Shown here: positions 12,569 through 25,100 of the stretch, in pieces
How the letters are laid out: each line of letters begins with the position of its first letter
Position numbering within the stretch: position 1 is the stretch's first letter
DNA from: Piromyces finnis finn
Taxonomy: Eukaryota > Fungi > Neocallimastigomycota
Length of the DNA stretch: 64,000 nucleotides
Direction: 5' to 3'
NCBI GenBank assembly: GCA_002104945.1
Contig: MCFH01000057.1
Coordinates: 124,001 to 188,000, forward strand
Position numbers and translations under genes: made by a program
The notes under the pieces: model-generated
What the model was told of the DNA's origin: nothing
Database searches by the model: none
The model's input: only the letters and a program-made list of their open reading frames with translations

Positions 12569-13400
12569 TTAATCATCTAAAATATGTTTTCTTTTTCCTT
12601 TTAGAGGTTTGTTTACTTTTCTTCCAAAGTAAAAACTACAAAATAGAACTGATGTGATAAGTAATATTATAAGCATTATAAAAACATAAAATATATTAAC
12701 TTCATTATCAAACTTTTTTTTTTCATTTGAATTATAATCGTCAAGGCAAACACCAGAATAATCACAACAGTTACTATAACAATTTTCATCCTTTGAACAT
12801 TTTTGATTATTACTAAGTTTACAAATAACACCTTTTGAAGTAGGTTCCTTTTTGTTTGGTGTACATATTAATTCTTCAATATTAGAATTTGCTATACAAC
12901 AGTCACCTTTACAAAGCTCTGAATAACAATCTGAATCTTTTTTACAAAACATGTAACATTGACTACTTTGCTCTAAACTTGATTTCATTTTTAATGAAGT
13001 TTCAGTTCCCATGGAAAAATCTTTCTTGTATTCCTGTTCTACATCAACAGAAAAACTATGACTAATTGTTTCATTTCTATCTAATTCTTTGATACGTGGA
13101 ATTATTTCATTACTAATCTCATCTGGAATTTCAAGAAAACATGCATAATTTGTTCTACAGTAAAATTTAAAATCACAATAACTTTTTCCATCGTCACCAA
13201 TACTACAAGCAGTTGAATATTCTGGGCAATCGTCAAGACTATTACATTCTTTACTATATTAATATTTTTTATTTTACAATAATAAGAATTATATTTTTAA
13301 TCATAAAAATTTTTAAATAAATTAACAATTATTTTTCTTACTTTAATAGAATTAAAATGATTTTAATAAATTACTTTTCTATTTTCCTTTTCTTTATTAT
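12569..13400 (-). CDS. Cys-rich single-pass membrane protein (CxxxxDCxSxxC repeats); 5' end unresolved
   Basis: The frame is open from ~13255 (KECNSLDDCPEYSTAC...) through CKKDSDCYSELCKGDCC and CSKDENCYSNCCDYSGVC to the TM helix IFYVFIMLIILLITSVLFCSFYF and a basic tail. The candidate first exon (~13342-13390) has a GTAAG donor and hydrophobic codons but no clean in-frame ATG. Confidence 0.65.
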
Positions 13401-17548: not shown

Positions 17549-19923
17549 TTAATTTTCTTTTTTCGATCCACCAGAAACAATAGAATGTAAAACTGTTAAT
17601 ACAACAATAATAATTAACCAACTACGACGATCTTTCAATATAGTCATTGTATTTTGTAATACAGAATTTTCAGTTTTAGTACTTTTTTCAATTTCAGAAT
17701 TGTTTTCTTTTTCATCTAATAATTTAGTATTTTCATTAATTTCCTTAGTATTTTCACTTTTCTTTTCTAATATTTCTTTTTCTTCCTTTTCTTTTTCTAA
17801 TCTTTCTTTTTCTTCCTTTTCTTTTTGTAATCTTTCTTGTTCTTCCTTTTCTTTTTGTAATCTTTCTTTTTCTTCCTTTTCTAATCTTTCTTTTTGTAAT
17901 CTTTCTTGTTCTTCCTTTTCTTTTTGTAATCTTTCTTTTTCTTCCTTTTCTAATCTTTCTTTTTCTAATCTTTCTTGTTCTTCCTTTTCTTTTTGTAATC
18001 TTTCTTTTTCTTCCTTTTCTAATCTTTCTTTTTCTAATCTTTCTTGTTCTTCCTTTTCTAATCTTTCCTTTTCTAATCTTTCTTGTTCTTCCTTTTCTAA
18101 TCTTTCTTTTTCTAATCTTTCTTGTTCTTCCTTTTCTTTTTCTATAACTTCTTCATTTTCTTTTTCTTGGTTTGCCTTAAACATTTCTTTTTGTAAGGAT
18201 TGATTATCTTTTTGTAAAGGTTGAGATTCCTTAAATACTTTACTTTCTGTAATTAGTAATTAAATATGAAATGACAATAAAATTTTTAAAAGTTAATAAC
18301 TTTAATCAATAGAACAATAATAATAAATAATAATTATATAATAATTTCTTAAATTCCATACCACTTCTATAGAAACCTTTAGTTGGAACTATAATTATTT
18401 TTAATGTATAAATATAAATAATTTATTAATTATATTGTTTCTATATAGTATATTTAAATATTTATAAAACTATATATACTAAATTCATCCAAGTCAGAAC
18501 TGTCTTCTTTATCAAAGTTTACTATTGTTTAAAAAAAAAAAAAAAGGAAAAAAGTATTAAAAATAAAAATATAATATATTTATATATTTTATTTTGTAAA
18601 TAAAATATAGACGGTGGTTCTTACTTGATGAGGTGTCATCATTTTTCTTCAATTCTTCATGTAATTTATTTTCTAAATTATTGAAAGTTGGGAGATTTAT
18701 ATTATTTTCTTTAAAATTATCATATTGGGCTTGAACTTCGTTATCTATAATAAATAATTTTTGAAAGTGGTTTTAGATTATTTTTTCACTTTAACATTAT
18801 ATTTATTAACTATTTATCTTGCTATTGAAAATTAATTATCTTACCAGTAAATTCTAATTTACCAACAAGATCTCTTACAGCTTTTCCATAACCTCTTAAT
18901 TCTAAAAAGTGACTATTAAAAAGAATTTTCATAATTATAAAATTAATATTATTAATAAATAATTGTTATAATGAAAAGGATTGCATTACTAAAAATTATA
19001 TACCTTAAAGCATGAAGACAATATATAACTTTTGGAGAATTTTTCTTTTCGTAACAATCAGTAGTTTCAAAGTAAAAAATCTTTTTAAGAATATATATTA
19101 TTATCATTTTTTTTTTTTTTTTTTTTAGTAAATATTTATAAATCTTATTTTTTTTTTTTTTTTTTTGATGAATTTTTTATTATATAACACAGTATTTTTT
19201 ATCTTACTTCTGGGAATTTTATTTTTCTTAATGCATCAAAGAAATAATTGATATTATCTGAATGACGGAATTGCAATTTTTCACTCTATTATTAAAATAT
19301 ATTATTTTTATTAATTATTATATATTATTTAAATTATTATTATCATTTCTCTCCTTTTTTTTTTTTTTTTTTTATTTACTTCAAAAATCTTTTTAACAGA
19401 TTCTTGTGAAAATAATCTTGCTAACTCTGCCAAGGTTATACCGTATTGTAATTGATTTTCAAATTCAGAAATTGGTGCTAATTCTTTCTTTAACATACGT
19501 TCCATCCATCTATTATTAAATATACATATATTTATATAATTTAAATTTAAATAATTTTATTAATAATAGTAATTTTAGTTTTTTAGTTACATACTCTTTT
19601 GCTTCACCAACGTGACATAAATATTCATAAACTCTAAATTTATTTCTCTCTTCATCCATAATATCACTATTTAATCCATCTGTTGTATTAATAGTCCACT
19701 TCTTTCTACGATCTTTTTCAATAATTTATTTATAATTTTCAACATTGAAAAATTATATAATATATTATTTTTAATATAATAACATTATTAAATATATATA
19801 TACATATGTATATATAATTAAAATGTATAATAAATATTTACTATTTCCATTAGTTGAAAGAACCGAAGAAGAACGATGAATTGGTCTTTCTATATAATTA
19901 TTGTTATTAGCTACTTCAGTCAT
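17549..19923 (-). CDS. IQGAP-type calponin-homology domain protein with an EK-rich repeat stalk and C-terminal TM helix (no IQ/RasGAP)
   Basis: Spliced translation includes MDEERNKFRVYEYLCHVGEAKEWMERMLKKELAPISEFENQLQYGITLAELA...LQFRHSDNINYFFDAL...FYFETTDCYEKKNSPKVIYCLHALS...DLVGKLEFT. Phase-consistent short exons lead into the 17549-18247 exon, which ends RRSWLIIIVVLTVLHSIVSGGSKKEN*. Confidence 0.85.
17765..18140 (-). repeat. Coding tandem repeat (EKEEQERLEKERL-type units, 39 nt with shorter variants)
   Basis: Repeated TTCTTGTTCTTCCTTTTCTAATCTTTCTTTTTCTAATCT and ...TTTTGTAATCT variants on the + strand. Confidence 0.95.
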
Positions 19924-21203
19924 TTTATTTTAGATTATTAATAATATAAAAAAGATTATTTTTTTTAAAAAAAATATTTTTTTAAAAAGATATTTTTTTT
20001 CTTAAATAAAATATAATTAACTAAAATGATGCATTATGAAATATTTTCATTAAAACAATAACTTAATGGGATATTAATTACATTTCATATTATAATTATA
20101 TAATTATAGATAATTAATTCAATATTTATAGATTTAAATATTAATCTTTTACGAAAAAAAAAAAAAAAAGTTGACAATTTATTGTAATAAAAAATAAAAC
20201 TTTAATTTATAATATTTAATGGAAGTAAAATAAATGTTATAATTACGTTTATAAATAGAATTAAATCTCAAAAAAAGAATATATATATTTGTTAATTAAT
20301 TAATACACACAAATGATTTGAAAACTTTATAGATATAATAATAATTAATGAAATAAAAAAAACTTTTTATAATTTTACAATATTAAATATCTTATTACTA
20401 GCTTTAAAATCTATTGTAATTTTATGAATGTTTTAAAGATTATTCTATTACATTATATATAAAAAGTTATATATTATTCTATTATAACAAAGTTTTCATT
20501 TATCTTTGTTGCATTTTCTTAGTGTATGATGAACTAAATATTAAAAAAAAAAAAAAAAAATTATATTAACATTACTAAAGTTATTCTGTTCAATATGTTT
20601 ATGTGTATTACAAACTTTTTATAAAAAACTGAATAGGAAATAATTAGCTTTGCTGCTTTATATTTTTATTCAATTATTTTTACAATATGACTACTATTAA
20701 AATAATATGGTTGAAATTACTAATTCTACAATTATAATATATCATTAAATTTTAAAAAATATATATTATATATATTTACAAAAATAACATTATTATATAT
20801 ATATAATATATGATAATGATAAGCTTTTTTATTTATTTATTTTTTCATCTTACTTTGAAATTAACTTTATATACTTTAAACTTGTTACATTTTTTATTAC
20901 ATAATAAGTACAGAACATTCAAAAGTTTTTAGTTATATTCAAAGAATGTATACAGAAAATTATAAAAGTTTACTAATATTTAAATATTTTAATTAAATTT
21001 AAGCTTCAATGTAAACAGATTTTATATATTTTATATTTTATTATTACAGCAAAAAAAAAAAAAAAAAAGAATTTTTTTTTCAAAGTTTAAATATTATGCT
21101 TTTTATTATGAATAAATGATCTGAAGCAATGATTAAAAAAATATTTCTTAACATTATTTTTCAATACACAAAATAATTATAGTAATAACATTAAAGTGAT
21201 CAA

Positions 21204-22112
21204 ATGCTATATAGTAATCAACGTGCTAAAGTAGATAGTAATTTTGGAAGACCATATAAAAATGTACAACAATATTCTAATCATTCACTACCAAATACTA
21301 TATCATTAATTCAACAAAAGTACTTATATTATTATTATAATAATATTATTATTGTATTAGTGTTGTTATCATATTACTTTTATAATTTTTTTTAAACATG
21401 TAATTAACTTATATTATATTATAGATACCAAGTAAAAAATGATAAAAATGATGTAAGTATAAAGAATATAATATAATAATGAAAAAAAAAGACTTTGTAA
21501 TAATTATTATTTTATTTAGATATCAAAAAAAAGTAAAAAAAAAGTAATTACTAATGATGAAAATTCACCAGATTATGTATTCAAAGATGATCAGAGTAGG
21601 AGTTTATGTTATCATTATAAACCCATTTTTTTTTTGTGATATCTAACTTTATTTTTCATTTTTTTTTTTTAAATTATATTTTTGTAGAATTATGGACATC
21701 ATCAACTTGTCTTTATATTGAAGTAAAATTTATTTATTTATTCAATTATCTGTGTATTTATTTATTTATATATAATTTAAATAATCAAATCTAATAAAAA
21801 AAAATAGTCTATTGGGAATGGCGACAAACTCAACAAAGTTCAAAATACATCTCAATCTAATCCAAAACTCAATAATAAATATATAAATTCCACTGATTCA
21901 AATATATCATATATAAATTCAAAATTAATAGATGGAACAATTAACCTAAAGATAAATAATTTTAGTCAAGATATGAATTTATATAATGATGATTCAATTA
22001 CTAAATACGATACCATATCGGAAAGAAATAAAATGAATAAACCTTATTCTAAAGAAGTAATGAAAAAAAAAAAAAAAAAAAAAAAAAGAAAAAAATACAA
22101 TTTACTATTAGA

Positions 22113-22198
<86 letters not shown>

Positions 22199-25100
22199 CA
22201 TTATTATCTAATAAAAAGAAAATAATAAATATATTAATATAAATAATTGTTACTTTTATTCATATAGCCATCAGAAAGATATTCTTATTTAAAAATTGAA
22301 GATACAGGACAAGAAAGAATCAATCTTAGTAGAAAAAATCTTTATGTAAAAAAAAAAAATAATTAGTTTAAAACTATACCCTTTTTTTTTTCATTAAATT
22401 AAAATTAAATCTTTTCATTTATATTAATAATAATATAACAAAAGTCATGCGTTCATATATCAGGAGAGGAAAGAGTTAGACTATTGAATTATCAAAATAA
22501 TTTTATTTCACGTATAGAATGTTTATCGAATTTTAGAAATCTTATATTTTTAGATTTTTTTAATAATAATATTGAGGTATTAATAAAAAAACAATTCATG
22601 ATAATTCAACAACAACAACAAAAAAAAAAACATTCTTGTTTGTCATTCATTATTATAACAAACTAAAAAAAAACAGTTATTAATAAGCAAATATCCATAT
22701 AATTATTTATCTAGAAAATTCAAGGATTGGATAATTTAAATTCATTGAGAGTATTAATGCTTGGAAGAAATAAAATATCAAAAATTGAAGGATTACATTT
22801 TGTTTCAAAATTGGATGTATTAGATTTACATAACAATGAAATTACAGAAATTGGTAAATTAACTATTTTTATATTTTAGTACCCTCATAATATTCAATGT
22901 ATTTAGAATAGTTTTAATAATTAAAATTATCAAAATTATAAATAGAAAACCTTAGTACCTTATCCGAGTTAAGAGTTTTAAACCTTGAAAATAATAAAAT
23001 TACAGAATTAGCCAATCTACATGGTTTGATAAGTTTATCTGATTTAAACCTAAAAAATAATCATGTAACTTTCTCATTATCTATGATGCTATTTATAAAA
23101 ATCAAATATATATATATATATATTATTATTATTATTATTAATTAAATACAATTAAAAATTCTCAATAGATTTCAATCGTTAGAAATATTCCTAAATTAAA
23201 TAATTTAAAAAAAGTATGTCTTGCTGGAAATAAAATAAAATCATTCAGTGATATCAACGACTTAAACATTCTTCACCTTTTTGGTAAGAAAGAAAAGAAA
23301 TTATTATTACAATTATTAATTTTGTTACTAATGAATAATTTAAATTTAATCATTTGGATTTTTAAAATTTATATTTACTTTTGAAAATAAAAGATATATC
23401 GTTGGAGCATAATCCAATATTTAATATACCCTTATATAGATCAACTCTTATATTCAAATTTAGATATATCAAAATATTAGATGGTCATAGAGTAACAGAA
23501 GAAGAAAAACGTTTATCCTATAAAATTACAAAAAAAGAAGAAGAAAAAAGAAAAGAAAATGAAAGAATTACACAAAAAAACGAAGAAAAGTAAATATTCT
23601 ATTTTTATTTTAATAAAATTATAAAATTAATAGTAATACTATCAAGATAAATAAAAAATACAGAATAGTATTAATCGTATATATATATATATATATTATT
23701 ATTTTACCAAATAAAGAAAAAAGAGTATTAATAATATTCAAGAATTATGGAAACAAAAAATGAGAATTATTCAATCGAATCTGAATGATAATGGTGTTGT
23801 AGATTTAAAGTGTCTCAAATCAATTAATAATAATTCATTATGTCAAACCAATACTCAATTAGAAAATAACAATTCTTCCACATCAATTAAACCAAATTCT
23901 AGTATTTCATCAATTGATTCAAATTCAAATTCTACTACTACAATTAGAAACAGAAATAAGCTCGGTTCAGCATCGTCAAATTCACGTTCACTACTAAATT
24001 TGTATAATGGAAGTAACTCAGAATCAACTCTTCATTATTCTTCTTCCTCTTCTCTTTTAAATTCAAAAGATTCTTTATCTACCAATTCTAGGCCATTAAG
24101 TTCTAAAACTTCATATTTAAGAAATTTTACTAATAAAGTAAGAAATAGTATTAGTTCTTCGAGTCAAAAATTGTTATCAGTTAATGAAAGTAATAATTAA
24201 AAAATAAATTAAATAATTTAAAAATAAATTATAGAATATATTATAATGATCAAAAATTATTATCATTATTTTTAAAATATACTTTAATGTTTTATTATTA
24301 AATAATAATAATCATTATTTCTCTTTTTAAAATAATTTCTTTTTTTTAGTAAAAAATGATTCTCTCACATCATATATTGAACAGAATAAAAATGAAATAA
24401 GATTGTAAATAATTCAATATAAAAAGATAAATAATAATATATACTTATTTTTTCAACATATTCATTTTTAAATATTACATTATTTTAGATATGGTGATAC
24501 AAATGTTAATCTTGATAAATTAGATGCAACAGGAATAAAAACAATTTGCTTTTATTATATTCATATAAATAATATTATTGAAATAATGGATAAATTAAAA
24601 AGATTTACTGAGCTCAAAAAATTAATATTTTCAAATAATGATTTTTCTTCTTTAAATCAGGTAATGTATATATAATATTAAAAATAAGAGTAATATAAAT
24701 TAAAAAAATTTTTTTTTTTTTTTTTTTTTTTTTAATTGGATTTATAAAGTATTCATAAATTGTTAACAATCCTACATTTTAATTGAATTTATTATTTTTT
24801 TTTTAAAAAAAATTTTATATATAAATATATTGCTATTAGTTACACTCATTTTCAATATTAAGAAATATTGAGGAAATCGATATATTATCTTATGATAATC
24901 CAATAGTAAATTATGATAATTTAGTCTATTATATATTATATCGTTTAAAACACCTACCACTAAAAGTAGTATGTAAAAAAGAAATAACTGAAACCGATTA
25001 TGAAAATGCTGAACTAATGTTTGGTAAATAATATTATATAGTATCTATTTACTTATAAAACACAATAATAATATTAATAGGATTGAAATATTTAATTAAA

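Follow-up and report, generated by a model that had tools for sequence, protein, structure and literature searches.

The minus strand of a 64,000-nucleotide stretch of the anaerobic gut fungus Piromyces finnis (contig MCFH01000057.1, positions 124,001–188,000; this whole stretch is called the window, and positions are counted from its first letter) contains at 17549–19923 a 10-exon gene that joins an IQGAP-type calponin homology (CH) module to a charged spacer and a C-terminal hydrophobic helix. We consider it probable that the protein is a tail-anchored F-actin tether, likely of the endoplasmic reticulum (ER) type, and that it was derived by duplication of the IQGAP gene of the lineage. The joined coding sequence (CDS) has 1440 nt and encodes 479 aa with an intact frame, and each of the nine introns (85–129 nt) begins with GT and ends with AG. 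The GC content of the whole window is 20%. It falls to about 13% in the flanking DNA (~850 bp 3' and more than 1 kb 5' of the gene), and the gene is therefore a self-contained unit.

The window gene was searched exon by exon, and its orthologs (P0011, P0012 and others) were used as proxies for the full-length protein. When exons 2, 3, 4 and 5 were searched singly against the PDB, the best match of each was the CH domain of IQGAP1 or Rng2, in collinear order. Exon 2 (19595–19712) encodes the pre-CH helix and the start of the CH domain (…YEYLCHVGEAKE), with residues 25–53 of IQGAP1 (3i6x) as its best PDB match; its length of 118 nt and its phase are the same in Anaeromyces robustus. Exon 3 (19380–19509) encodes the first part of the CH domain, corresponding to IQGAP1 55–98, Rng2 19–60 and Pfam CH positions 10–51, and is 88–95% identical to the orthologs. 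The domain continues in exon 4 (19208–19285; …LQFRHSDNINYF…; Rng2 1p2x 63–87, E 2e-4) and exon 5 (19004–19080; IFYFETTDCYEKKNSPKVIYCLHAL; Rng2 88–112, E 6e-8, and IQGAP1 133–157), so that the junction of these two exons falls exactly at Rng2 87|88. No match was found in the PDB for exons 6 and 7 searched alone. Exon 6 (18845–18912; SHFLELRGYGKAVRDLVGKLEFT) encodes the end of the CH domain; it is collinear in the ortholog tblastn and lies within the match of P0011 to Rng2 31–201. Exon 7 (18625–18744; 120 nt, with the same length and phase in A. robustus) encodes the post-CH segment common to IQGAPs (…NNINLPTFNNLENKL…) and then the start of a variable linker. This segment of ~45 residues aligns with canonical IQGAPs, and the Rng2 match extends to residue 201. 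The peptides YEYLCHVGEAKEWM, FRHSDN and ETTDCYEKKNSPKVIYCLHALS, on which the preliminary description had based an IQGAP assignment, are reproduced exactly by the exon 2/3 junction, exon 4 and the exon 5/6 junction, respectively, and the three short exons that it had mentioned are exons 7–9 (120, 42 and 27 nt).

The full-length orthologs give much stronger matches than the single exons. By Pfam, the CH domain was detected weakly in exon 3 (E 0.014) and exon 4 (E 0.13), and it was the only domain detected in five full-length orthologs (E 1e-13 to 3e-15). Against the PDB, P0011 residues 37–207 match Rng2 31–201 with 48% identity (E 6e-44), followed by IQGAP1 (E 9e-43); the next CH type is calponin (4e-5). 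In the AlphaFold model of P0011 (mean predicted local distance difference test score, pLDDT, 76.7), a confident CH module at ~45–220 is followed by a disordered linker (237–265), a helix (262–370), a flexible stretch (369–387), a juxtamembrane helix (388–400) and a confident terminal helix (402–421). The modelled CH module superimposes on IQGAP1 (5l0o) and Rng2 (1p5s) with TM-scores of 0.89–0.90 and a root-mean-square deviation of 1.8 Å. The ESM Atlas returned generic CH clusters only (score 0.75). An alignment of 19 canonical fungal IQGAPs has 49 invariant or near-invariant columns, and at 42 of them all nine family members have the identical residue.

The other IQGAP domains are absent. No IQ, RasGAP or RGCT domain was detected by Pfam in any exon or full-length ortholog, and the same scan detected IQ motifs in a canonical paralog fragment, contig L013 (E 4e-18). 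When three canonical IQGAPs and the open reading frame (ORF) of L013 that covers the IQ motifs and reaches the GAP-related domain (GRD) were compared with the 64-kb window by tblastn, only the CH exons were matched. No RGCT follows the hydrophobic helix, which is succeeded by a stop codon and then by the low-GC intergenic DNA of the 3' flank. An IQGAP-family CH domain without IQ, RasGAP and RGCT, as had been described from the letters of the window, is thus confirmed by the exon-wise PDB matches and the Pfam and tblastn negatives. Of the four domains that define an IQGAP, the protein has the CH domain and lacks the IQ, GRD and RGCT domains. By this domain content the protein is not a member of the IQGAPs but an IQGAP-derived, putatively tail-anchored CH protein.

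The C-terminus of the window protein has the geometry of a tail anchor. The hydrophobic helix WLIIIVVLTVLHSIVSGG (17567–17620, W457–G474), which includes an invariant His, has a GRAVY17 (grand average of hydropathy) of 2.35. Its Kyte-Doolittle mean is 2.0–2.35 and it ends 5–8 residues before the stop, while the rest of the protein does not exceed 0.46. The same geometry is found in all seven full-length orthologs and in the last-exon fragment P0030. All of these eight complete tails have one segment with a GRAVY17 of 1.84–2.54, 1–9 residues after it and a tail charge of 0 to +2. In each of them the hydrophobic core contains no charged residue and the segment is flanked by basic residues. When the tails are aligned on the His, they follow the pattern [W/L]-Φ7-[T/S/A]-Φ-Φ-H-[S/A]-Φ, preceded by a conserved juxtamembrane Φ-[LF]-[KQRN]-D. 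Outside the tail, the highest KD19 hydropathy values are 0.46–0.63 across the members, the N-terminus is polar and disordered, and there is no signal peptide. A sole hydrophobic segment at the C-terminus, a short tail after it and no other hydrophobic stretch are the features of tail-anchored proteins. In yeast, ER tail-anchored proteins have a transmembrane domain GRAVY above 1.75, and low tail charge together with high hydrophobicity favours the ER (PMC5450235). By extrapolation of these values, the tails of the family would favour the ER and outer nuclear membrane over mitochondrion-type organelles or peroxisomes. The nucleus, the ER and the hydrogenosome had all been proposed as the target; the hydrophobicity and charge rules favour the ER over the hydrogenosome.

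The CH exons and the exon with the putative anchor belong to one transcription unit. Exon-sized queries are too short for word-index search, and relatives were collected by an exhaustive protein search with exon 3 and then by a search with P0002. The exon 3 search returned P0002 (95% identity) and a canonical 1647-aa Smittium IQGAP. With P0002, the family was found to include A. robustus BCR32DRAFT_269905 (P0012, 506 aa), which is annotated as 'CH domain-containing protein', P. finnis BCR36DRAFT_400137 (P0014, 246 aa), Piromyces sp. E2 PIROE2DRAFT_14544 (P0016, 239 aa), and P0011, P0041, P0013, P0015, P0017, P0018 and P0030 from Joint Genome Institute (JGI)/Logan proteins. The JGI/Logan orthologs lie on contigs of 1.1–1.5 kb, in which the CH module, linker, spacer and anchor are encoded by one uninterrupted ORF between untranslated regions (UTRs) of 5–18% GC. 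This ORF is replicated on four JGI contigs for P0041 and on seven for P0018, from several samples. Since the contigs lack the nine or ten introns of the genomic genes, they are spliced transcripts. P0002 seems at first to lack the anchor, and this was rejected as biology: its contig L001 has a frameshift in the repeat, and the supposed 3' UTR encodes the next part of the cluster sibling P0041, which has the anchor. In L007:1–3108, an ABC-transporter ORF is fused to the P0018 transcript; upstream of -12 this contig does not match the other six P0018 contigs, and it is probably a chimeric assembly.

Gene structure and synteny agree with the transcripts. With the protein threaded onto its genomic locus, the A. 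robustus ortholog has exons of 49/57/118/130/78/77/68/120/51/27/746 nt, compared with 82/118/130/78/77/68/120/42/27/698 nt in the window. All nine introns of the window gene recur in A. robustus with position and phase unchanged; the annotation of the latter has one additional 5' intron. Six orthologs gave successive tblastn matches on exons 8, 9 and 10. Exon 8 (18480–18521, 42 nt) encodes the acidic linker and has its donor at 18480. Exon 9 (18362–18388), identified by tblastn of the six orthologs, has only 27 nt and encodes IPTKGFYRS, an instance of the family pattern F[VI]P[ST]x[SGN]FYR; the same 27-nt exon with the same phase is present in A. robustus. Exon 10 (17549–18246) encodes the SLQKEMFK motif, the ER/K repeat spacer, the juxtamembrane helix, the putative transmembrane helix and a tail of 5–8 residues, with the stop codon at 17549–17551. 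A divergent multi-exon neighbour on the plus strand (~21200–24400) is syntenic with a 1050-aa gene without Pfam domains beside the A. robustus ortholog, with tblastx blocks of up to 100% identity. In four small runs (20–45 million letters), 0.27–0.41 of the locus words were present, compared with expectations of ~0.43 if only exonic 31-mers are present and ~1.0 for genomic DNA; we infer that these runs contain exonic words only, that is, transcripts.

The deposited models of P. finnis and Piromyces sp. E2 read past the exon 8 donor into the intron (18454–18521 in the window). P0014 equals our model over 238 residues, through the end of exon 8, and then ends with 'SIYSFINI*', which is intron 8 translated. 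As the exon 8 donor was left unspliced, exons 9 and 10 with the spacer and the anchor were missed. The Piromyces sp. E2 model also omits 'SHFLEL' at the exon 5/6 junction. That all parts form a single gene, as first described, is borne out by the intron-free ortholog transcripts that join them and by the A. robustus ortholog, which shares all nine introns and their phases. On these comparisons, it is well supported that the locus is a real, expressed and conserved gene of the anaerobic gut fungi (Neocallimastigomycota).

To trace the origin of the family, a maximum-likelihood tree was built from the CH module (28 rows, 170 columns). All family members form a single clade (100/100), which has a stem of 0.59 substitutions/site and short internal branches and is sister (91/92) to a canonical transcript, P0020. 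The family and P0020 together adjoin chytrid IQGAPs, a placement that is weakly supported (61/60). The CH ORF called P0020 lies on the JGI contigs L013/L014 (186–1785), and these contigs and the family transcripts share a sample series. A second ORF there, which overlaps P0020 and is shifted at an A-run, encodes three IQ motifs (E 4e-18); it aligns with canonical IQGAP residues 285–558, to the start of the GRD (E 1e-49). L013/L014 represent the 5' part of a canonical CH-IQ-GRD transcript that the gene caller split at the frameshift in the A-run. The GC content at third codon positions (GC3) of the canonical transcript is 0.19–0.20, similar to the range of the family CDSs (0.13–0.18), while that of an unrelated IQGAP transcript is 0.49. 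P0247 was also considered as a gut-fungal canonical IQGAP and was rejected as coming from a GC-normal organism.

To judge from composition and phylogeny, gut fungi thus most probably have a canonical IQGAP alongside the family. Because a canonical IQGAP of gut-fungal composition is its sister, the family is best read as a lineage-specific duplicate, in agreement with the earlier proposal that an IQGAP copy had been re-purposed. Within the searches made, relatives with this layout were found only in Piromyces, Anaeromyces and AT-rich transcripts. The proposed lineage-specific layout fits this distribution, and the family appears confined to Neocallimastigomycota as far as searched.

The regions of the gene are under different selection. 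When the window gene was compared with three orthologs, the ratio of nonsynonymous to synonymous substitution (dN/dS) was 0.07–0.13 for the CH and post-CH segments, which indicates strong purifying selection. It was 0.37–0.61 for the N-terminus, 0.29–0.46 for the linker and 0.21–0.94 for the spacer. Some motifs are conserved outside the CH module. Exon 1 (19842–19923, start codon 19921–19923) is the same in the P. finnis annotation P0014; its product is the disordered N-terminus, in which [HR]RSSSVLS is conserved. The extended motif [HR]RSSSVLSxxG…(R/K)(R/K)KW ahead of the CH domain (19842–19923 and 19595–19712, residues ~14–35) is present in all orthologs, and the RRSSSVLS region is a candidate phosphorylation site for a basophilic kinase (RRxS). 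In the linker (18362–18521 and 18200–18246), [DE][DE]F[VI]P[ST]x[SGN]FYR and SLQKxMFK are conserved amid variable sequence. The acidic-F motif was considered as FFAT-like and rejected, as its positions do not match FFAT.

The spacer of the window protein is a tandem repeat in exon 10 (17774–18141) with a 23-aa unit similar to EKEEQERLEKERLEKEEKERLQK; Tandem Repeats Finder gave a period of 69 nt, 4.6 copies and 92% matches at 17818–18141. Opposite-charge i,i+4 pairs occur at 0.49 per residue, compared with 0.25 ± 0.03 in shuffled sequences, and 14% of the residues are hydrophobic. The spacers of Piromyces and P0011/P0041 consist of ~70% E/K/R/Q, and the equivalent region of P0011 is modelled by AlphaFold as a single helix of 109 residues (262–370, pLDDT 84–97). 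A coiled coil was rejected, as the best heptad a/d occupancy is 0.21. The window spacer therefore has the signature of an ER/K single alpha-helix (SAH) without a hydrophobic seam. SAH spacers occur in myosin VI/X and caldesmon. The gut-fungal spacer resembles them in having twice the chance number of i,i+4 pairs, no hydrophobic seam and one modelled helix (in P0011), but differs in that the spacer type is not conserved in the family. ER/K repeats are present here and in P0011/P0041, EKVEEQPVEP in A. robustus, PPVD in P0013 and only a short stretch in P0018; the Pro-rich spacers of A. robustus and P0013 are not of the ER/K kind. The EK-rich helical repeat of the preliminary description is indeed present as an ER/K-type helix, but it forms no coiled coil and is not kept between genera. 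On the opposite strand, the 167-aa S/F/L-rich ORF at 17700–18203 (+) is the antisense of the EK repeat and not a gene.

A model of how the protein may work can be proposed. The IQGAP copy would have kept the N-terminal F-actin-binding module, that is, the CH domain and the ~45-residue post-CH segment (about Rng2 31–201), and a hydrophilic, rapidly evolving spacer with a C-terminal transmembrane helix would have taken the place of the IQ motifs, the GRD and the RGCT. After synthesis in the cytosol, the protein would be inserted post-translationally as a tail-anchored protein, and its hydrophobicity and low tail charge would direct it to the ER and outer nuclear membrane. There the CH module would be held ~16–24 nm off the bilayer by the ER/K helix in Piromyces and by a Pro-rich acidic stretch in Anaeromyces, and by binding F-actin it would link the membrane to the filaments. 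By lateral diffusion in the fluid membrane, the protein may also stabilise curved filaments like the engineered Rng2(1–189) 'curly'. The comparisons above establish the structure of the gene, its domain content and orthology, the selection on its CH module and the retention of the anchor; membrane insertion, the identity of the membrane, actin binding and any bending are what we infer. The earlier suggestion of an actin-to-membrane tether is supported by the anchor geometry of all complete orthologs and by the 42 of 49 IQGAP-invariant residues that are kept.

The layout can be compared with the known actin-membrane linkers. Nesprins and other KASH proteins, calmin and Dictyostelium interaptin combine a tandem type-1/type-2 CH pair with spectrin or coiled-coil rods; the KASH peptide of the nesprins consists of a transmembrane helix followed by ~30 luminal residues ending with PPPX. 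The gut-fungal proteins follow the plan of these CH-rod-transmembrane linkers, in which an extended rod separates an actin-binding CH head from a membrane helix at the C-terminus, but they have a single IQGAP-type CH domain and an ER/K or acidic Pro-rich spacer. By Pfam and tail comparison, no KASH peptide or Pro-rich end, no tandem CH and no spectrin repeat were found in the family. The earlier comparison with nesprin/KASH proteins holds for the layout, but not for the KASH peptide, the tandem CH pair or the spectrin repeats. CH-rod-transmembrane actin-membrane linkers are known in animals and amoebae but, to our knowledge, not in fungi, where a literature search also returned none, nor is one known to us that has a single IQGAP-type CH domain as its head. 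That search found no paper pairing IQGAP with Neocallimastigomycota, and the sole paper on 'calponin homology' and anaerobic fungi concerns focal-adhesion proteins. The syntenic ortholog, A. robustus P0012, has the same introns, CH module and anchor and a different spacer repeat. In comparison with the IQGAPs (S. pombe Rng2, S. cerevisiae Iqg1 and human IQGAP1–3), the pre-CH helix, CH domain and post-CH segment are alike, but the gut-fungal proteins have 342–506 aa instead of 1100–1800 aa and end in a spacer and a hydrophobic helix.

The actin-binding fragments of IQGAPs have been studied on membranes. Rng2(1–189), which contains the CH domain and an unstructured region, binds single actin filaments on a fluid bilayer and bends them into rings (Palani et al. 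2021, eLife 10:e61078; PMC8315802; PMC10111394). Iqg1(1–330) and IQGAP1(1–678) likewise bind and bend filaments, and a laterally mobile tether is needed (PMC8315802). The gut-fungal proteins retain the region equivalent to Rng2(1–189) together with a putative membrane anchor. They could act as a natural 'curly on a membrane anchor' on the ER or nuclear envelope, less likely on the hydrogenosome, and shape curved actin or rings around organelles, or along cleavage membranes when zoospores form, an extension of the tether model that we regard as rather unlikely.

Several observations weigh against a tail-anchored, IQGAP-derived actin tether, and some of them favour one of its rivals. In place of the separate full-length IQGAP that the preliminary description had proposed to look for, a CH-IQ-GRD transcript fragment was found; no named full-length gut-fungal IQGAP was among the best 120 matches of word-index searches with canonical CH regions. 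The targeting rules applied to the tails were established in yeast and mammals and are carried over to gut fungi here. The structure of the spacer differs across genera, and a function that needs a fixed length or rigidity is therefore doubtful. As for bending, 'curly' is an engineered protein tethered directly by an N-terminal His-tag on Ni-lipids, whereas the gut-fungal tether would be natural, C-terminal, transmembrane and 16–24 nm distant, and CaaX-tethered curly gave no enhanced bending in cells, with high cell death reported (PMC8315802). The support for expression and junctions comes from orthologous transcript contigs and word fractions, not from reads on the window locus. With the deposited P. 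finnis and Piromyces sp. E2 models ending after exon 8, this might suggest that the CH and EK/TM (transmembrane) exons come from different genes or that the locus is a decaying duplicate. Such an artefact is extremely unlikely, as the ortholog transcripts join all parts, introns and synteny are conserved, the frame is open over 1440 nt and strong purifying selection acts on the CH domain. The short hydrophobic core (~15–17 residues) contains a His, the last 45 residues (41 codons) have a dN/dS of ~0.9, so that the tail sequence evolves fast, and chance hydrophobic ends are frequent: 21.5% of random stop-free segments of the 20% GC window end equally hydrophobically. Since a hydrophobic C-terminus alone is within chance, the anchor claim rests on conservation among orthologs. 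These points would fit an essentially soluble protein, whose C-terminal helix serves in oligomerisation, as a lipid-droplet or amphipathic element, or as a degradation signal. This is unlikely in view of the GRAVY17, uncharged core and basic flanks of eight of eight tails, each with a stop at most nine residues on, and of the confidently modelled helix. In a simulation of neutral substitution (~0.4/site), an equally hydrophobic open end with a stop within 10 codons was retained in 4.5% of trials, that is, ~4.5% per lineage.

The membrane anchor and the CH module might also have other partners than those proposed. The protein could be membrane-anchored while its CH module recruits other IQGAP-CH partners or acts as a decoy against the canonical IQGAP, to which we assign a small probability. 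The change of Leu to Cys in ETTDCYEKKN is the sole clear family-specific change in an IQGAP-invariant column, and it is one of nine residues of the CH block that became fixed in the family along its long stem of 0.59 substitutions/site. The motifs outside the CH domain (RRSSSVLS, FVPSxSFYR and SLQKxMFK) suggest additional partners or regulation, and WASP and Arp2/3 are reported as further partners of the CH domain of IQGAPs (PMC10111394). In contrast, 42 of 49 IQGAP-invariant residues are intact with a dN/dS of 0.07–0.13, and the module spans the entire actin-binding fragment of Rng2, Iqg1 and IQGAP1. The order of CH domain, extended rod and C-terminal transmembrane helix is also that of nesprins, and ER-type tail-anchored proteins do get to the outer nuclear membrane, where the protein might be held by SUN proteins as a KASH-like nuclear-envelope linker. 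With only 1–9 residues after the helix, no PPPX-type terminus, no spectrin repeat and no second CH domain, this is very unlikely. The tail-anchored F-actin tether remains the probable reading.

Two other ORFs were noted in the window: a Cys-rich ORF of 147 aa with a C-terminal hydrophobic segment at 12569–13012 (-), and an ORF with a poly-Leu run of ~34 residues at 21973–22242 (+).

The public models of P. finnis and Piromyces sp. E2 are truncated and need correction, and surveys of domain architecture in these genomes miss the family. The spacer is a region where length and charge alone, neither sequence nor secondary structure, appear to be selected. With its evolved spacer lengths and a putative real anchor, the family would provide a natural test case for the actin bending that membrane-tethered IQGAP CH domains perform in vitro. 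If true, the 'curly on a membrane anchor' would be the first natural example of bending that has been shown only with engineered constructs. For the gut fungi, the family would represent a case in which a large cytokinetic scaffold was trimmed to its actin-binding head and reused as an integral membrane tether.

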